Shown piece after piece: positions 1 to 59,156 of a stretch of DNA of 64,000 nt. The translations under genes and the position numbers were made by a program. Source of the stretch: Salpingoeca rosetta. Lineage: Eukaryota; Protista; Choanoflagellata. Where the stretch lies: positions 203,512 through 267,511 of the forward strand of contig JAWQFM010000009.1 of the NCBI GenBank assembly GCA_033442325.1. The letters run 5' to 3'. The notes under the pieces are model-generated. The model did not search any database. It had not been told where the DNA came from and saw nothing but the letters and a program-made list of their open reading frames with translations. Within the stretch, counting starts at the first letter, position 1. Each line of letters starts with the position of its first letter.

Positions 1-7048
<7,048 letters not shown>

Positions 7049-49000: not shown

Positions 49001-49101
49001 GCAGGGCCTTCGTCAGCATGTCTGCAAGCAGCTTTGTGCCGGGTTCATACACTGCCTTGACGACGCCTTCGCCAATGAGCTCGCGCAGAAGGTGATAACG
49101 C

Positions 49102-52100
49102 TGTAGAAACACGACAGGTGTGTGTGTGTGTGTGTTTACTGTAGGCAAACGCAACAAACAAGAACACAAGGAGAATGAACAAGCACAACAAGCTGCTGCC
49201 TAATCAACTCGGGCAGCACGCTCAAACAAACACTAGACAAGTGCACACACAGTCAATGACGCTGCCAAGGCGACATGGGCAGAGTGTGCACGAACACAAA
49301 CAATCTAAACAATGAGCAGCATGCATACATGCGCGCAGAGCAATGCTAGGCATGGCATGAATGCTTGCAGGCAAGCATACACAACAGACAACACTTCACA
49401 ACACTGCATGGCACGCACACATAGCATTTGCCAAGCATGACGGGCATGCACATACACACAAACACATGGCACACAACTCACGTGTGTAGGGGAAGGAGGA
49501 GAGGAGAGGCAGTTGGCACACATGCATGCCAGCAGAGAGGAAGGAATGTTTGCAAACGGAAAAACCACAAAGCAGGTGTTGTTGGCAAACAAGACAAAAC
49601 CACATGAGAAGGCAAATTAGGAAGGACTCAACACAAAACAGAAACGCACTGACTCTCAACACTCCCCCTCAACTGCCTTCCTCTGCTTCGTCTCAGACGT
49701 CGAGGTTCCCACCAGTCGTGGCAGGTGCTGCTCGAAGGTCTGCTTGTCCAGTGCCTTGGTCAGCGCGTCGGCAACCATCTGCGTGCCGGGACAGTGCTGC
49801 AGCACAATGGTTCCGTCGGCGATGAGCTCCCGCACGAAGTGGTGGCGTACCCGGATGTGCTTCGTGCGCGGCTTGGTGACGTGGTCGTTGCCGATGGCGA
49901 TGGCCGCCTGGTTATCTGTCAGCATCTTGGTGGCTCCAGCCTCGGGCTCGCCGAGGTCCATGAGCAGCTGCCGCAGGAAGACGACATCCTGCGCTGCTGC
50001 GGAGATGGCCATGTACTCGGCCTCGGCGGTGCTCAGCGCAACCGTGGGTTGCAGCCGGCTGCTCCAAGACACAAGACAGCCGTTGATGTAGCAGGTGAAG
50101 CCCGTCGTGGAGCGGCCCGTCAGCTGGTCTGTGCCGAAGCTGGCGTCGCTGTAGCACACCAGGTCCAGCGGTTGGTCCTTGCGCGTGCCGCTGCGTCGCT
50201 TGAAGAGGAGGCCGTGCTCGCTCGTCGCCTTCAGGTACCGCACGACGTGCTTGGCTGCCTGCCAGTGGACCGTCGTGTAACGGTCCATGTAACGGCAGAG
50301 CAGTCCGCACGCGAAGCTGACGTCTGGTCTCGTGCGGTTGGCCAGGTACAGGAGCGAGCCGACGAGGTTGCGGAAAGGCAGGCGTCGGTCGGGCTGCTCG
50401 CTGATGCTGGAGGCGTCGATGCCAACGCGCATGGGCGTGGACACGCTGGCTGCCGCTGCCAGGTTGTAGTCGTTGACGATGTCGTTGATGGCCTGAGTCT
50501 GCGCAATGTGCAACACCCCGTCAGCTGGTGACGTCAGGTGAAGGCCCAGGTACCAGGTGAGCGGGCCCAGGTCCTCTGCCTCGAAGCTCTCCTTGATCTG
50601 CTGCTTGCAGGCACGGATGTGGCGCTCGCTGCTGCCGCTGATGATGAGGTCGTCGACGTACGTGATGATCCATGTGCGCTGTCCGTCGTCGTGGAGCTTG
50701 GTGAAGAGGCAGGCGTCGACGTTGCTCTGCGCCCATCCGTTGGTCTTGAGGAAGGTGTGGAGGTTCTTGGCCCATGCATTGCCCGCTTGCTTGAGACCGT
50801 ATGGCGGCTTGAGCAACCGGCACACCTTGGCCGCGTATCGTTGAGCGGCGTCGCCGATGTCTGTGAAGTGCGGCGGCTGCTCCCTGTACCGCTCCTCCTT
50901 GAGATCAGCCTGCAGGTAATCCGACTTGAAGTCGAGCTGGTGCAGCTGGTGCTGTGCTGTCGTTGCAGGAGACTACAGTGAGGATGGTCTTGGCTGCTGG
51001 TGTTGGGGCGTAGGTCTGGTGGAAGTCGATGCCCGGTCGTTGGCTGAAGCCCTTGGCGACCCAGCGTGCCTTGAAGCGCGTCGGCGCGCCCTCAGCATCA
51101 CGCTTCACCTTGAAGACGAAGCGTGACTTGAGAGGCGTGTGCTGCCGTGGCACGACGCTGCGTGGGATGAGCTTGATGACGCCGTTGCGCTCCATGGCCC
51201 CCGATCTCCTCCAAGCACGCCTGAGTCCACTGCTTGCGTTGCTGGCTCTTGAGTGCCTGCTTGATGCTTGCAGGCTCCGTGAGGCTGGTGTCGTCGCTGC
51301 TGCTTGCTGTGAACGCGCCTGCCTCGGTGTCACTTGCATCTGTTGTGTCTGGATCGTAGTTGGCGTCGTTGGTGTCGCTGCTGCTGTCGGCGTCAAAGTC
51401 CGTGAGCAGGAAGTCTGTCTCGACATCCTCGTCCTGGTCCTCGTCGATGTGAACCGTTGGTGGCTCACCGTCAGTGGTGCTGTTGCTGCTGTCACGTACA
51501 CTGGGAAGCTGGAGCATGGACGATGTCGTGGATGTCTGCACTTGCTCCTCCCACTCATCCACGACATCATCGGCCTTGGAGAAGGAAAGGAAGCGGACGT
51601 GGATTGTGACGGAACTGTGGTCGAGGTGTGTCGGTGGCTTGTTCTGTGTACTGATGTGAGGTAAACCAGGGAACAAAAGAACTGAACAAGGCACAGACAA
51701 TCACGTGAGATAAGCGACAACAGGGTGCAGGGCAACACACACGTGCTAGCAGGCAANNNNNNNNNNNNNNNNNNNNNNNNNNNNNNNNNNNNNNNNNNNN
51801 NNNNNNNNNNNNNNNNNNNNNNNNNNNNNNNNNNNNNNNNNNNNNNNNNNNNNNNNTCCATCTTGAATCCTGGCGTGGAAACGACGTGGTCCGACGGGTC
51901 AGACATACTGCACGCTCAAGAAGGGTGATGGAGAAACAAGAGAGGGGAACAAGCAGAAGGGAGAGAAGAAGCACAAGCGAGTGTGAGACAAGTAGCGATG
52001 ATGATCAGGAGTGGCTGGGTCTCATAATCTGTAGAAACACGACAGGTGTGTGTGTGTGTGTGTTTACTGTAGGCAAACGCAACAAACAAGAACACAAGGA

Positions 52101-52589
52101 GAATGAACAAGCACAACAAGCTGCTGCCTAATCAACTCGGGCAGCACGCTCAAACAAACACTAGACAAGTGCACACACAGTCAATGACGCTGCCAAGGCG
52201 ACATGGGCAGAGTGTGCACGAACACAAACAATCTAAACAATGAGCAGCATGCATACATGCGCGCAGAGCAATGCTAGGCATGGCATGAATGCTTGCAGGC
52301 AAGCATACACAACAGACAACACTTCACAACACTGCATGGCACGCACACATAGCATTTGCCAAGCATGACGGGCATGCACATACACACAAACACATGGCAC
52401 ACAACTCACGTGTGTAGGGGAAGGAGGAGAGGAGAGGCAGTTGGCACACATGCATGCCAGCAGAGAGGAAGGAATGTTTGCAAACGGAAAAACCACAAAG
52501 CAGGTGTTGTTGGCAAACAAGACAAAACCACATGAGAAGGCAAATTAGGAAGGACTCAACACAAAACAGAAACGCACTGACTCTCAACA
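49102..52589 (-). mobile_element. Ty1/copia element A nested in the RNase H of B. LTRs 52030-52589 and 49102-49661
   Basis: Two apparently identical 560-bp TG..CA LTRs, TSD AACGC (49097-49101, 52590-52594), PBS GATTATGAGACCC, PPT TTGAGGGGGAG, RT/RNase H ORF 49656-50825 (YGLKQ, YVDD, YSDAS, STAEAEY, ADALTK). Gap at 51757-51856. Confidence 0.95.
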
Positions 52590-52849
52590 AACGCAGCCGT
52601 ATGTGTTTGGAGCCGCCCTTGGCCACGGGATTGGTAGCAATGCACATGGCAGACTGGCTGTCCATGTGGAGTGGTGTGGTGCCGACGTCGAATCCCAGCT
52701 CCTGGAGGAGCTGTCGCAGGTACACCGCAGCCTGTGCTGCGCGCGCAGCGGCGACGTACTCTGTCTCCGCCGATGATGTTGTGACGAGAGGCAGCCTCTT
52801 GGACAGCCATGTCACAGGGCCACCGGCGATGGTGAACAGGTGGCCTCCA

Positions 52850-53390
52850 TGTTGTGGAGTGCCACAACAAGATTCCCTTATCACTACAAAAGCATTACAA
52901 ACCTTAAGCTTAAATGGCCTTCGTAGCCAAGCGGGTGAAATGCTAGCCTCTTTTATTCCCGCTCTACAACACTTGGTAGCGATTGGGTTGAAATCCACCG
53001 CCCTTCACAAGGAAAAAAAACAATCCTTGTCAGGAGTTGAGATTACTCCTCCTTTACTTCCGTCCGACCCGGACTATAAGTTCCGAACCGGACATTCAGC
53101 TTTAGCTCCCATTGCGGACGTGAGTCCTCCTCTATGGACACTGCCTTGCGATTGACGAGTGTGCTGCGGTTCCTTGAGAAAGGTTACCGCCACACTCATA
53201 GTCTTCGCGGTGAGGACTTACGTTCGCTCGGTTGAGCATTAAGCTTCTTCCTTTTAACGAGGGGAGAGTGTTGTGGAGTGCCACAACAAGATTCCCTTAT
53301 CACTACAAAAGCATTACAAACCTTAAGCTTAAATGGCCTTCGTAGCCAAGCGGGTGAAATGCTAGCCTCTTTTATTCCCGCTCTACAACA
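52850..53390 (+). mobile_element. Element C: 541-bp non-coding TRIM-like LTR retrotransposon
   Basis: Identical 122-bp LTRs (52850-52971, 53269-53390) with TGTTG..CAACA ends, TSD CTCCA, PBS TGGTAGCGA 2 nt after the 5' LTR, PPT GAGGGGAGAG, and a 297-bp interior with no recognisable ORF. Confidence 0.92.
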
Positions 53391-56300
53391 CTCCATGCCC
53401 CTTCGACGTGTAGGGGTCAGACATGTGACTTGCGTCTGTGTAGCCAAGGAGTTGAAGCGAATCACCCGCACTGTACTTGATTGCCAGAGCCGCCGTGCCC
53501 CGTAGGTACTTGCAGACATGTCTGGCCGCGTGTAGGTGCTGCTTGCCGGGTTGCTGGATAAATCTGGAGAGCACGGATGTGGCGTAGCTGATGTCGGGAC
53601 GCGTCGTCACTGCGAGATACAGCAGACTGCCAATGATGCTCTGGTAGTGACGAACGTCGACCTCGGCTTGTTCCACCGGCACGAGCTTCATCTTGACGGG
53701 GAGTGGAGTTGCCTTCGCCTTGCAGTCCTCCAGGCCTTCTTGCTTCAGCACAGTCTGGATGTAGTCGTGCTGGTTCAGCGTCATAACGCCGCGTTCTCTG
53801 TCATAGGAGATCGCAATGCTGAGGTATTGTCGTGGCGCGCCCAAGTTCTTGAGGTCGTAGTTGGCTGCAAGCACAGCCTCTGCACGGTCCATGTGCTCCT
53901 GTGTCGTTGCCGCCACAAGGAAGTCGTCGACGTGCACGCAAATCATGACTGTGCGATCCTGGTTGACGAAGATGCAGGCGTCGGACCGCAAACGCTGGAA
54001 GCCGCTGCCGCCAATCGTCTTCCAGACAGATGCGTACCACAGCTTCGGCGCCTGGCGCAGGCCATAGAGGCTCTTGCGCAGCTTCAGCACAGACCCGGCC
54101 AGGGAGGTTGCTGCCTGCGGCGGACGCACAAACACGTTTGTCATGTCGAGCTCGGCATGGAGAAAAGCCGCAGACACATCGAACTGGCACAGCAGCATGT
54201 GTCGCTGGGCTGTAGCAGCGAGAAAGGTGCGCAGAGCCTCGAAGCGTGTCGTGGGCGAAAATACATCTGCGTATGTGTCCTCCGTCTGCCGGTTGCCGCA
54301 GCAAACAAACCGGACTTTGTGGACAATACTGCCGTCCGGTTTGTGTTTCACAGCAAAGACGAGCTTGGACGGTATTGGTCGCACGCCCATGGGAAGAGTG
54401 CGCTGGTCAACGATGTCGAAGACATCGTGCCGAATCATGTTACTCCACTCCTTGACGAAGGCCTCCTGCCACTTGCTCTTGTGTGCAGAGGCCATGGCGT
54501 CCCGCCATGTCTTGGGGACCGGCTGCTGCGGTGGCTGGTGCGTCTGTACCATCGCATTCTTCAACAGGGTAGTCCGCAGGCAGAGGATGTCGGTCTCGTA
54601 GCCGTCACTGTCGTCGCTGTGATCGCCATCGCCATCGTCATCACTGCCGTCGTCTGCCGTTGACGAGTCAGGATGCTTGCTGTTGACGGCACAGCTTGTC
54701 TTCTGCTGTGCCGTGGGTGCTGATTGCGCGAGTGGTGCAGATGTTTGTGCGCCGCCGCTGTCGCCCTGCCGCATGGGGTCAGGTGTGTTCTCGTCGCCCT
54801 GCCGCATGGGGTCAGGTGTTGATGCTGTTGCTGCTGGCATCACCCATAGGTTCTGCACAGTGCTGGTGCCGTTGCTGCCTGTGAGTGGTGATGTCGGTAA
54901 AGCACCCCCTTGACTCGTGCAGTCAACCTCTTCCAGGAAGTCAACGTGGATGGAGGACCTCACTCGCCCAGTTGCCTTGACGTAGATGCGATGCGCGTTG
55001 CATCGCGTGTCGAAGCCAACATAGAAGCCTTCCATGGCCCGTCGGGGAAAGGCCTTGCTCTTGTCCGTGTGGACGTGGTCATACACGAACGCCTTGCAGC
55101 CGAAGACGCGCACGTGCTGCAGTGGCGAAGGCTTGGCGAAGAGAGCCTGGTACGGTGACATGCCCAGTTGGGAGTGCGGAAGAAGGTTGTACACCCATGC
55201 AGAGTGTCCAAGCGCAGCAGACCAGAGCTTGTCCTTGAGGTGCTGCGGCAGTGGTGCCGTGTGCAGCATGGCAGCGGCAGACTCCTTCAGCGTGCGAATG
55301 CTTCGCTCCACAAGCCCGTTGTGCTCGTGCACATGTGGCGGACTGTAGCGAAGGCGAAGGCCAAGCTCGTTTGCCGTTTGCACGAAACGCCGAGACGTGA
55401 AGACGGGATCGCTGTCCGTTTGAACGAGGGTGCCACGGTCAACTGGTATTGGCGTCGTTGCAACGAAGTGGCGAAGCGCATCTGCAGCCTCGCTCTTGGC
55501 CTTGACATAGGTGCAGTCCATGAACCGGGTCCTCTCGTCTAGCCAAACCAGCGCGTACTTGCTGCCCTGGATCGACGGTGGGAAGGGCCCAAGAAGGTCG
55601 AGGTGCAGCGTGTCGCCCGGGCTTTCGGCATCTCGAACTGCCTGCTTGCTGATGGGCTTCTTCACCGTCTTGAAGGCCAGGCAGCCCTCACATGTGGCCG
55701 AGCTGGGGTCGCACGCAGGGTCGCTGCTGCTGCCCGTGCTGTCGCTAAACCGCACATTCTGCTCCTCCAGAGACTTGCGAATCGTGTGAAGGGAGCGATG
55801 GCCGAGGCGACGATGCCACGTGTGCAGTGTGTACACTGCGTTGCACTTCTGCATGACCTCGGGCTTGCCCAGCTGCGCGTCAAAGTAGTACGTCTTGTCG
55901 TCGTGCTGATGCAATGTCAGGATCGAGCCGTCAGGACAAGCAACCGCCGACGTCTTCTTGTCCAGGCACACCTTGAGGCCTGAGTCGACGAGCCTGCCGG
56001 CCGAGAGGATGTTGAACCCAAATGTGGGAAGAAACATGACGTTGTTGATGGTCACAACGACATCCTCACCCCGGACTCCCTTCGTCTGCAGCACGACCTG
56101 GCCTGCTTGCTCCACTGTCACCTCTCCACCAAGTCCATGGACTTTTGCTGGTGGCGTCAGTGGGTACAGATGCGTGAATGCCCCAGGGCTGGCGAAGATG
56201 TGCACAGATGACTGCGTGTCCACGCCAATAGCGTTGCCTGGGAGGCTGATGCGGTTGCTCGAGTCTCGAGGTGACGTGGCCATCTTGAGTGACACATGCC

Positions 56301-59156
56301 TTGGCTCTAGCCGTTGTGCCACAGGCTGACGACGATGATGTTGCTGTTGTTGCTGATGATGCAGTCCTTGGCGCACGCCATCACCACCACGCCCACCGGT
56401 CTGTCCTTGAGCGTTGGCTGGGTTGTGGTAGCACTCGTGCTCCTTGTGGTAACCAAACTTGCCACACCACTTGCAGATGGACTTTTGGCGCTGTTGTCGT
56501 GCCTTTCCCTCACCAGCCCTTCGCTTGGCAGACATGCGAAACACCTTGTCATCAAACGCTGATGCTGGTTGCTGTGGTGGAGACGCGTGCAGAACCTTCA
56601 TCATCGTCTCATTCACTGTTGCTGTTGGCTCTTTGAACTCCTTCATGAAGTCAGTGGGCTTGCTGCTGTGGAGACAGGCAAACAGAATCCAGGATGCTGT
56701 TGTTTCTTTCGTCATAGCCTCACTCATCTCGTACACAGCCTTCATCTTCTCGTAGGCCGTCAACACTCTCTTGCTGTAGGAGTCTTGGCTGTCATCGTTC
56801 TGCCAAGCTGTTGCAGCAATGAACTCTGCGAGGTAGGTCGCCTTCTTTCGCTCATCGTTCGCGTGCTTGTAGTAGTTGTCGAGTGCGCGCCAAGCTGCTG
56901 TTGGATCATCATGCCCTCGCACAATCAAGGCCACCGCCTCCTCACAGTTCTCCAGCGCTAACATCAAGCTGAGGTGGACGTGCTCCTTCTCTTCCGTGGA
57001 GGCGCCGTCATCACCCTCAAGCACCTTCTCCGACCCGGGTAGTGTTCGTTTCACATACCGTTTGAAGTTGAGCTGGAAGAGGCGAAGCTGATCTGGACTC
57101 CCGTTGAAGTGGGGAAGGGAAGCCAGGGACAGGTCCATGGGTCTCATAATCTGTGCCATGTCGAACGCAAGACAAGCAGAGGATGTACGTGTGTTTGTGT
57201 GTGCGTGCGTTAGCGTAGTGGTATGCTCACTTGTCTGCGTGTGTTTGTGTGGGTTTACTGTGTGATGTGGAAGACAGATGGGAACAAGGATGAATGAACA
57301 CAAGTGAAGCACTCCCGCATTGTGGCAGAAACAACAAAGAGATTGGACGAACAACACGCAAACATATGCAATACTGCACTTTGTGTGGAAGCAACACACA
57401 GCTTGAACGAAGAAAACGGAAGTGTAACAACCACAGCAGAAACCGGTTGGATCGCAGAACTATTCATGCTGTCTCCAGCTTTCCGGACATAAGCAAACAC
57501 ATCCACATGCACATGACACGGACTCGTCTCTCCACAGCCGTGGCTGACGACGGCCGCCTTCTTGAATGGAGCTGCTCGTCCGTGCTGCGGGCGAGAGGAT
57601 CCTGGCCGCTTGCCGTTGCCGTTGCCATGGTTGCGAAGCGTAGCCAGGATCTGCCGCACGTCGATGACGTGGTAGCGCTTGGCCGCCTGCAGCTTGCGGC
57701 ACTGCTGCGCGCAGTGGCCGCGGAAGTTGCAGAACGCGCAAGTCACGCGCTCTGCAGGTGGACAGCATGGTCCACCGCTCGTGTCGGAGGGCGACGTGCC
57801 AGCGTGCATCGGCGATGCAGCGAAGGAGCCGGGGCTTGGCCCGCCGATGGCGAGCACGGGCGTGCGCTTCTTGGGACGATGCAGGCGGCGCTCCTCCTGA
57901 ATGAGGTCCGCCGTCATCTTGGACAGCGATGGCGGCGGGTCCTCGCGCTCCATGAACCGCATCGCCACATCAAACTCCGCGGGGAGTTCATTGCGGACGA
58001 GGGTGCGCAGGTCGTCCTCCGGGATGGACACGCCGGCAGCGAGGAGCTGCGAGTTGATGTCCGTGATGCGGGACATGAACGTGTCAACGGTGTCCGTGGG
58101 CAACCAGGTGGTCGAGGAGAGCTGCTGCCTGAGACGACTCACGTGGTCCTTGCCGCTGCGGATGTAGCGCTCGCGGAGGCGGCGCAGCGCAAGCACACCG
58201 GAGCGGCCACGGTTGTCGGTGATGGCCAGCCGCAGCGGGTGTCCCGTCAGGACGCCAAGGAGGAACGCGAAGATGGCTGCGTCAACCTGTGGATCACGGG
58301 GATCCAGCAGGCCAGAGGCTCGGGACGCCACCTGCGCTCCTCCGCTCGGGAGTGGCGGAAGAAGGGAGAGAGGAAGAGGAGGAAGATGGCTGAGCGCCGT
58401 GGTCGTCGCCGTCGCCCTCGTCGTCGTCATCGTCGTCGTGGTCCCCCGCGTCGTGGCGGACGCCAGTGCGGCGAGGGGCGCGTTGAGGGCGGGGGCGAGT
58501 GCGGGGACCCGAAGCACCGAGGATGGATGGACTGGGCGATGAGGCAGCTGCTGGAGCCTGCCCGTCTCCTTGGTGGTCAGCAGAGCCTCGTCGATGATGC
58601 CAGCGTCGATGCCAGCGGCGATGAGCTTGGCCTCGACGGTGATGAAGAAGAGGTTGGCATCCTGCTCAGCGCCAGCGAAGACCTTGATGCCGTCTGCGCT
58701 AATTGAGCTGGGTCTCATAATCTGTTGTAAGTTCATGCTGGTGGTGCTGTTGTTGGAGACTTGTGTGTGTGTGTGTGTGTGCAGAGTGTGCTGTGTGTTG
58801 TGTGGGAGATTGTCTTGGCAAGAGAGAGTTGTGTGTGTTTACTTGAGTTGTGAAGCAAACAAGGATGTAGGATGAATGAACACTCCAACAGAAAGAAACA
58901 GAGCACAAGACAAGAATTGTCGACAACGCAAAGTGGTGACGTGGCAGTGTTTGTTGAGAGTTGTGTGGTTATGTGGTGTGTTATGCAAGAGCATGTAACA
59001 TCGAGCAACCACACAAGGTAAACACTGCACGTGCAACAGGTTGGAGGGAAATCACGTGAACATTCCAGAACACAAGAGAGGTGAATGTAAATTTTGGTGT
59101 CGTAAAGAAGGGAGGTCAATGATGACTCAGCAGACAGGACTTGCCTGTCAACATCC

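Follow-up and report, generated by a model that had tools for sequence, protein, structure and literature searches.

A miniature LTR retrotransposon of the TRIM type in the choanoflagellate Salpingoeca rosetta, probably mobilised by a resident chromovirus

Background

A sequence of 541 bp, bounded by two LTRs and without coding capacity, lies within a Ty1/copia element of Salpingoeca rosetta. This raises two questions: what kind of element is it, and which element, if any, moves it? The sequence is located in a stretch of 64,000 nucleotides (contig JAWQFM010000009.1 of assembly GCA_033442325.1; G000:C9:203512-267511), called 'the window' here. Positions given without a contig name are those of the window. 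An initial annotation, made from the sequence alone, had described the element as a recently inserted, TRIM-like miniature retrotransposon.

TRIMs are non-autonomous LTR elements of less than 1000 bp with terminal repeats of 100 to 250 bp and an interior that extends from a PBS to a PPT (PMC6934838). They have been documented in plants, fungi, ants, the honey bee, cestodes and bivalves (PMC6934838, PMC3532108, PMC4558846, PMC4717578). A literature search found no paper that connects 'in miniature' elements to choanoflagellates or to any other unicellular holozoan. The element examined here is very probably a genuine TRIM, and a chromovirus most likely mobilises it in trans.

Structure of the element

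The features of the element and the loci of its family are listed in Table 1. A direct-repeat search returned positions 52850-52973 and 53269-53392 as 100% identical at a spacing of 419 bp. This repeat is 124 bp and not 122 bp long because the dinucleotide CT happens to follow both LTRs: the first CT forms the spacer that precedes the PBS, and the second forms the first two letters of the TSD. The initial 20 nt of each LTR are a palindrome, TGTTGTGG-AGTG-CCACAACA (52850-52869 and 53269-53288), and the terminal motif ACAACA is therefore present twice per LTR.

Table 1. Features of the TRIM in the window and loci of the TRIM family in the S. rosetta assembly
Feature	Position or locus	Strand	TSD	Basis or remark
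Left TSD copy	52845..52849	.	CTCCA	Sequence reading
5' LTR, 122 bp, TGTTGTGG...CTACAACA (TG...CA)	52850..52971	+		100% match to 3' LTR
CT spacer, 2 nt, LTR to PBS	52972..52973	+		Also in all chromovirus families examined
PBS TGGTAGCGATTGG	52974..52986	+		Complement of tRNA-Met(CAT) 3' end plus CCA
Weaker similarity to tRNA T-arm complement	52987..53007	+		Alignment with one 2-nt gap
Non-coding internal domain, 297 bp	52972..53268	+		308 bp in the 552-bp variant
Long imperfect hairpin in internal domain	53098..53245	+		MFE folding versus shuffles
PPT GAGGGGAGAG	53259..53268	+		Adjoins 3' LTR
3' LTR, 122 bp	53269..53390	+		Direct-repeat search
Right TSD copy	53391..53395	.	CTCCA	Sequence reading
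Host Ty1/copia gag-pol ORF	53396..57399, resumes 52590-52849	-		Pfam RVT_2, rve, gag_pre-integrs, SH3_retrovirus, Pol_BBD
Full copy, 541 bp	C9 (window)		CTCCA	
Full copy, 552 bp	C32 (L002)		CTCAT	
Full copy, 552 bp	C14:1485331 (L003)		Non-matching	
Copy entering gap	C14:1470511 (L004)			First 3 nt of LTR missing at 5' junction
Solo LTR, 4% diverged	C34 (L005)		GTGGG (perfect)	Between host genes
Solo LTR, 10% diverged	C27 (L006)		Near-perfect	Between host genes
Solo LTR, 13% diverged	C3 (L007)			
Solo LTR, 17% diverged	C34 (L008)			

The total length is 541 bp, or 552 bp in a variant found elsewhere in the genome, and both are thus below 1000 bp. The GC content is 50.5% in the interior and 43.4% in the LTR, compared with 57.6% in the host ORF. 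The longest ORF in the 541-bp copy has 71 aa and no Pfam match. The 552-bp variant does not preserve this ORF, which a 2-nt indel there shortens to 32 aa. Rfam assigns no family to the interior. The identical 122-bp LTRs, the 5-bp TSD, the PPT directly before the 3' LTR and the 297-bp non-coding interior, richer in AT than the host element, had all been read correctly in the initial annotation.

When folded, the interior reaches an MFE of -113.9 kcal/mol, against -84.2 +/- 5.1 for shuffled sequences (z -5.9), and this is mainly due to the long imperfect hairpin. The interior of the 552-bp variant gives a similar fold (z -5.6). The predicted hairpin is a candidate packaging or dimerisation signal.

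The LTR also contains TAGCCAAGCGG, which we take to resemble the box A consensus. Could the element be a more specialised small LTR element, either a Cassandra-like pol III TRIM or a retrozyme, with a hammerhead in its LTRs and a circular RNA? We regard this as extremely improbable. Retrozymes and Cassandra TRIMs are, like the element in the window, small non-autonomous LTR elements with a tRNA-Met PBS, and its size and PBS resemble those of plant retrozymes (PMC4918200). Its LTRs, however, include no hammerhead ribozyme, 5S or tRNA gene: none was returned by Rfam 15 on both strands at E values up to 10, where the only matches were snoR31 and ST7-OT3 at chance level (E approximately 7 to 8), and ARAGORN finds no tRNA in the TRIM. 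A TTTT run shortly downstream of the box-A-like motif also speaks against a pol III unit. In view of the Rfam and ARAGORN results we treat this motif as a chance match. At the sensitivity of Rfam 15 and ARAGORN, a retrozyme, a Cassandra element and a tRNA-derived LTR are ruled out.

Insertion site

Four paralogues of the host copia element (L010-L013, 99% identical) cross the site without the TRIM. In L011 the empty site reads gtggc CTCCA tgccc, while L013 has CCCCA instead. In L010 and L012 the BLAST coordinates are contiguous across the insertion site. Empty sites with a single CTCCA indicate that this is a true insertion. Together with the identical LTRs and the TSD, they uphold the earlier description of a recent and complete insertion.

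The window copy sits within a copia element and copy L004 within a mosaic of LTR fragments, both in TE-rich and gap-rich DNA. This location of two full copies fits chromodomain-guided targeting, with which it is compatible without being proof. More generally, nested copia fragments and LTRs, interrupted by six assembly gaps, make up an island at positions 43800-64000 of the window. The genome as a whole contains more than 35 copies of a repeat of approximately 140 bp that lies here at 52450-52589, the end of a 561-bp copia LTR.

Copies in the genome

A search of the 55.4-Mb S. rosetta assembly (G000) with the TRIM identified eight loci: three to four full copies and four solo LTRs. Copy number is therefore very low. 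No further locus came to light when the two solo LTRs with the highest divergence served as queries. A search of the genome with the interior only (E up to 10) found nothing outside the four TRIM copies, and metagenome contigs scanned for the initial 23 nt of the LTR contained no match. The 1.5 kb flanking the C32 copy on each side contain no rRNA, and no scored SSU hit falls on C32. The genome-wide comparison suggested in the initial annotation does find copies at separate sites with different TSDs (CTCCA, CTCAT and GTGGG).

The 552-bp copies agree fully in their interiors, which differ from that of the 541-bp copy by an additional 13 bp (indel), the loss of two A and five substitutions. The LTRs of the full copies (C9, L002, L003 and L004) are all identical except for one substitution in the 5' LTR of L003. 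The identical LTRs of the full copies point to recent activity and, judged from its sequence, the TRIM is probably still mobile. The solo LTRs are 119 to 128 bp in length (n = 4). Since those diverged by up to 17% already measure approximately 120 bp, the miniature format is old: it is older than the oldest surviving copies.

The two copies on C14 (L003 and L004; L061-L063, G000:C14:1470511-1485883) are in the same orientation, lack matching TSDs and flank a scaffold gap of 14,016 N. As this gap separates them, the pair may be a single insertion or two, a composite element, a product of recombination or a chimera of the assembly.

With its 122-bp LTRs, a length below 1000 bp, a tRNA PBS, a PPT and no coding capacity, and with TSDs, empty sites and solo LTRs, the family has the characteristics of a TRIM. 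It might instead consist of internally deleted derivatives of an autonomous parent with the same LTRs that is absent from the assembly or concealed in its gaps. The assembly is indeed gap-rich around repeats and could for that reason lack an autonomous relative that has these LTRs. Deletion derivatives are common, and truncated copies are reported for 10 of the 13 published families (PMC6875170). Nevertheless, we consider a deleted derivative quite unlikely. None of the 12 LTR matches in the genome assembly adjoins coding DNA. The copies have a common interior (297 or 308 bp) that is unique in the genome, and only its junction motifs match the chromoviruses Sroscv1 and Sroscv3. The most diverged solo LTRs, as noted, are already short. 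In addition, the published consensus library (PMC6875170), which is read-based, includes no LTR shorter than 168 bp. Seven 12- to 13-mers of the TRIM are also absent from its supplementary files, a test that is weakened by the line breaks stored in those files: GGGGAGAGTGTTG, which is present in a genomic Sroscv1 copy, is likewise unmatched there. The idea of a single-copy deletion fails in the face of three to four full copies and four solo LTRs at different sites, with a unique interior. Derivation by deletion from a known family was also rejected, as the assembly contains no coding element with these LTRs or this interior.

Primer tRNA and PBS

The PBS is complementary at 13 of 13 nt to the 3' end of tRNA-Met(CAT) plus CCA. 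A tRNA pattern search recovered seven identical or near-identical 72-nt genes ending in CCAATCGCTA, on C7 and C35, which ARAGORN assigns to tRNA-Met(cat). They have an A1:U72 pair, a GATCGAAAC T-loop (A54 and A60) and three G:C pairs in the anticodon stem (28-30:40-42). A1:U72 and an A54/A60 T-loop are hallmarks of eukaryotic initiator tRNA, and this tRNA-Met(CAT) would accordingly appear to be of the initiator type. The initial annotation had thus recognised the type of PBS, directed to the 3' end of an initiator-Met-like tRNA, but had made it too short. The seven genes (L021-L027) are arranged in three small clusters at C35:508538-511549, C35:582196-584916 and C7:437952-438239.

The exact 13-mer occurs in the genome only in the four TRIM copies, and no autonomous element in the genome carries it. 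Similarity to the complement of the tRNA continues past the 13 nt and reaches approximately 34 nt with one 2-nt gap (p approximately 0.02, 2000 shuffles). This is suggestive of an extended PBS at 52987-53007 or of an old read-through copy of the primer. Sroscv1 shows a comparable, shorter similarity to the tRNA past its PBS.

Relationship to the resident LTR retrotransposons

The genome contains 23 occurrences of the junction ACA-CT-TGGTAGCGA. Four belong to the TRIM copies and two (L036 and L044) are apparently chance sites. In all the others the junction joins the 5' LTR of a chromovirus-type element to its PBS, and five families are represented. Over the LTR end, spacer and PBS, the TRIM and Sroscv1 are identical for 20 nt (TACAACACTTGGTAGCGATT), and over the PPT and LTR start for 15 nt (GGGGAGAGTGTTGTG, that is, GGGGAGAG+TGTTGTG). 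Sroscv3 shares a 20-nt run at the first junction, with a one-base shift, and has a single mismatch at the second (TGTAGTG).

Sroscv1 is also intact. One copy (L055) is 5290 bp long, with identical LTRs of 243 bp and an uninterrupted ORF of 1454 aa that includes gag, protease, RVT_1, RNase H, integrase and a chromodomain. Family names were attributed from two consensus elements in the supplement of PMC6875170, whose LTR ends and PBSs are identical to those of genome loci: that with a 243-bp LTR is Sroscv1 and that with a 190-bp LTR is Sroscv2. This identity assigns the assembly to S. rosetta or to a strain that is nearly identical. The chromoviruses have 5-bp TSDs, and identical paralogous copies have been reported for Sroscv1 and Sroscv3 (PMC6875170).

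Sroscv1 and Sroscv3 therefore resemble the TRIM in their TGTTGTG.../...ACAACA termini, CT spacer, PBS for the initiator tRNA 3' end, GGGGAGAG PPT and 5-bp TSD. They differ from it in their size (5.2 to 5.3 kb), in their LTRs (243 and 394 bp) and in having a gag-pol-chromodomain ORF. Smith-Waterman comparisons of LTR with LTR and of interior with interior, between the TRIM and Sroscv1 or Sroscv3, gave scores no better than shuffles. As sequence outside the junctions is unshared, the TRIM is no simple deletion product of either family. In summary, it agrees with the chromoviruses in termini, spacer, PPT, PBS and TSD length but not in the body of the LTR or the leader.

The initial annotation had guessed at a gypsy/chromovirus helper and had proposed searching for an autonomous element with the same LTR ends, PBS and PPT. 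Sroscv1, with its 20-nt and 15-nt junction identities, is such an element. The CT spacer and PBS type are common to all chromovirus families examined, while Sroscv1 and Sroscv3 also match in termini and PPT, which favours the guess. The helper is most likely a chromovirus. Sroscv1 appears to fit best and Sroscv3 nearly as well, too closely for the two to be separated with confidence.

A three-LTR arrangement was also observed in an Sroscv3-like chromovirus (L060, G000:C4:1499000-1507000, minus strand, approximately 890-6794). Its outer LTRs match each other at 100% and have GTCGG as their TSD, while the inner LTR is approximately 93 to 94% identical to the outer pair. The 346 bp between LTRs 1 and 2 consist of CT, a PBS and 85 nt that are leader-like, followed by unrelated DNA.

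Could the TRIM be mobilised not by a chromovirus but by an abundant family of the Ty1/copia type, namely Srospv2 or Srospv3? The copia families are the most numerous and most expressed, and they too generate 5-bp TSDs (PMC6875170). The element next to the TRIM host (49101-52589, minus strand; identical 561-bp LTRs, TSD GCGTT) provides a useful control. Its PPT and LTR start, GGGGGAG|TGTTGAG, are similar to those of the TRIM and its primer is the same tRNA-Met(CAT). Given these similarities and the 5-bp TSDs, only the type of PBS, the CT spacer and the ACAACA end discriminate between potential helpers. In all three the copia element is different: its PBS, ATTATGAGACCCA, is an exact complement of the anticodon arm and follows a spacer of 1 nt, a different priming geometry, and its LTR ends in TTTCTACA and not in ACAACA. 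The LTR end, CT spacer and PBS are, by contrast, precisely the region of the 20-nt identity with Sroscv1 and Sroscv3. We therefore regard a copia helper as quite unlikely. At the level of sequence, the TRIM is chromovirus-like in PBS type, spacer and 3' terminus. The earlier statement that its priming mode differs from that of all surrounding copia elements holds for this adjacent element, the one that was checked. A single tRNA is thus used in different parts by two retroelement lineages.

Proposed mode of mobilisation

Returning to a TRIM dependent on a chromovirus, we infer how the element is transcribed and packaged, the identity of its helper and its present-day activity from the features described above. 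The TRIM would retain only signals that act in cis: two LTRs, a primer site, a structured leader and a PPT. The 5' LTR would drive synthesis of an RNA terminating in the 3' LTR. This RNA would be packaged in trans by the particles of a resident Ty3/gypsy chromovirus (Sroscv1 being the best fit, with Sroscv3 close behind). The 3' end of the initiator tRNA-Met would then anneal to the PBS and prime minus-strand DNA, while the plus strand would be primed from the PPT. Finally, the chromoviral integrase would recognise the TGTTG...CAACA termini and insert the product with a 5-bp duplication.

Comparison with known TRIMs and with the published catalogue

Plant TRIMs have a 5-bp TSD and a methionine-tRNA PBS. 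The founder elements from potato and Arabidopsis (PMC6934838, PMC4717578) resemble the S. rosetta element in that they are shorter than 1 kb, have repeats of 100 to 250 bp, a PBS and a PPT, lack an ORF and occur also as solo LTRs. They show no sequence similarity to it and are present in hundreds to thousands of copies, in contrast to the three to four full copies and four solo LTRs in this unicellular holozoan.

The animal elements PbTRIM of the harvester ant (PMC3532108), ta-TRIM of taeniid cestodes (PMC4558846) and biv-TRIM of bivalves (PMC6934838) are also miniature and non-autonomous. The PPT of biv-TRIM, GGGGAGA, resembles that of the S. rosetta TRIM. However, biv-TRIM has no recognisable PBS or candidate partner (PMC6934838), whereas here the PBS is perfect and intact candidate partners are found in the same genome.

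The survey of transposable elements in S. rosetta was protein-based and lists 13 LTR families, with LTRs of 168 to 580 bp, and no non-autonomous LTR element (PMC6875170). The present family is not listed there, which agrees with the expectation in the initial annotation that surveys based on ORFs would miss it and, as far as this published survey goes, argues against its having already been catalogued. The kind of element is already known: the TRIM family is new to the S. rosetta catalogue and involves no new mechanism. More tentatively, and with slightly more doubt than confidence, it could be a long-lived, still-active parasite of a chromovirus that has kept a structured leader dedicated to it and a region related to the primer tRNA that is unusually long (approximately 34 nt). 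On this view, no non-autonomous LTR retroelement would have been described before from choanoflagellates, or indeed from any of the unicellular relatives of animals. If this is true, the 541-bp TRIM would lend itself to use as a reporter of retrotransposition or for insertional work in S. rosetta as a model.

Significance

The S. rosetta TE library of PMC6875170 has been reused in a study of chromatin (PMC12572184). A catalogue derived from protein homology is blind to elements of this type, and analyses of TE silencing and H3K27me3 consequently miss the TRIM family. The effect on genome content is small, since only eight loci are concerned. With this element, TRIM-type parasitism of LTR retrotransposons reaches the unicellular organisms most closely related to animals. 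For several TRIM families, no autonomous partner is detectable (PMC6934838). With candidate helpers in the same genome, the helper-parasite pair is here directly testable in a transfectable organism.

A minor observation concerns the assembly itself. Many contig ends have SSU rDNA nearby, at a distance of a few kb at most and in some cases as fragmented copies (C23:4128, C36:1880, C7:3620, C19:5274, C4:7675, C35:10328, C24:18609 and C9:20062). This suggests either that rDNA units are located near chromosome ends or that the arrangement is an assembly artefact.
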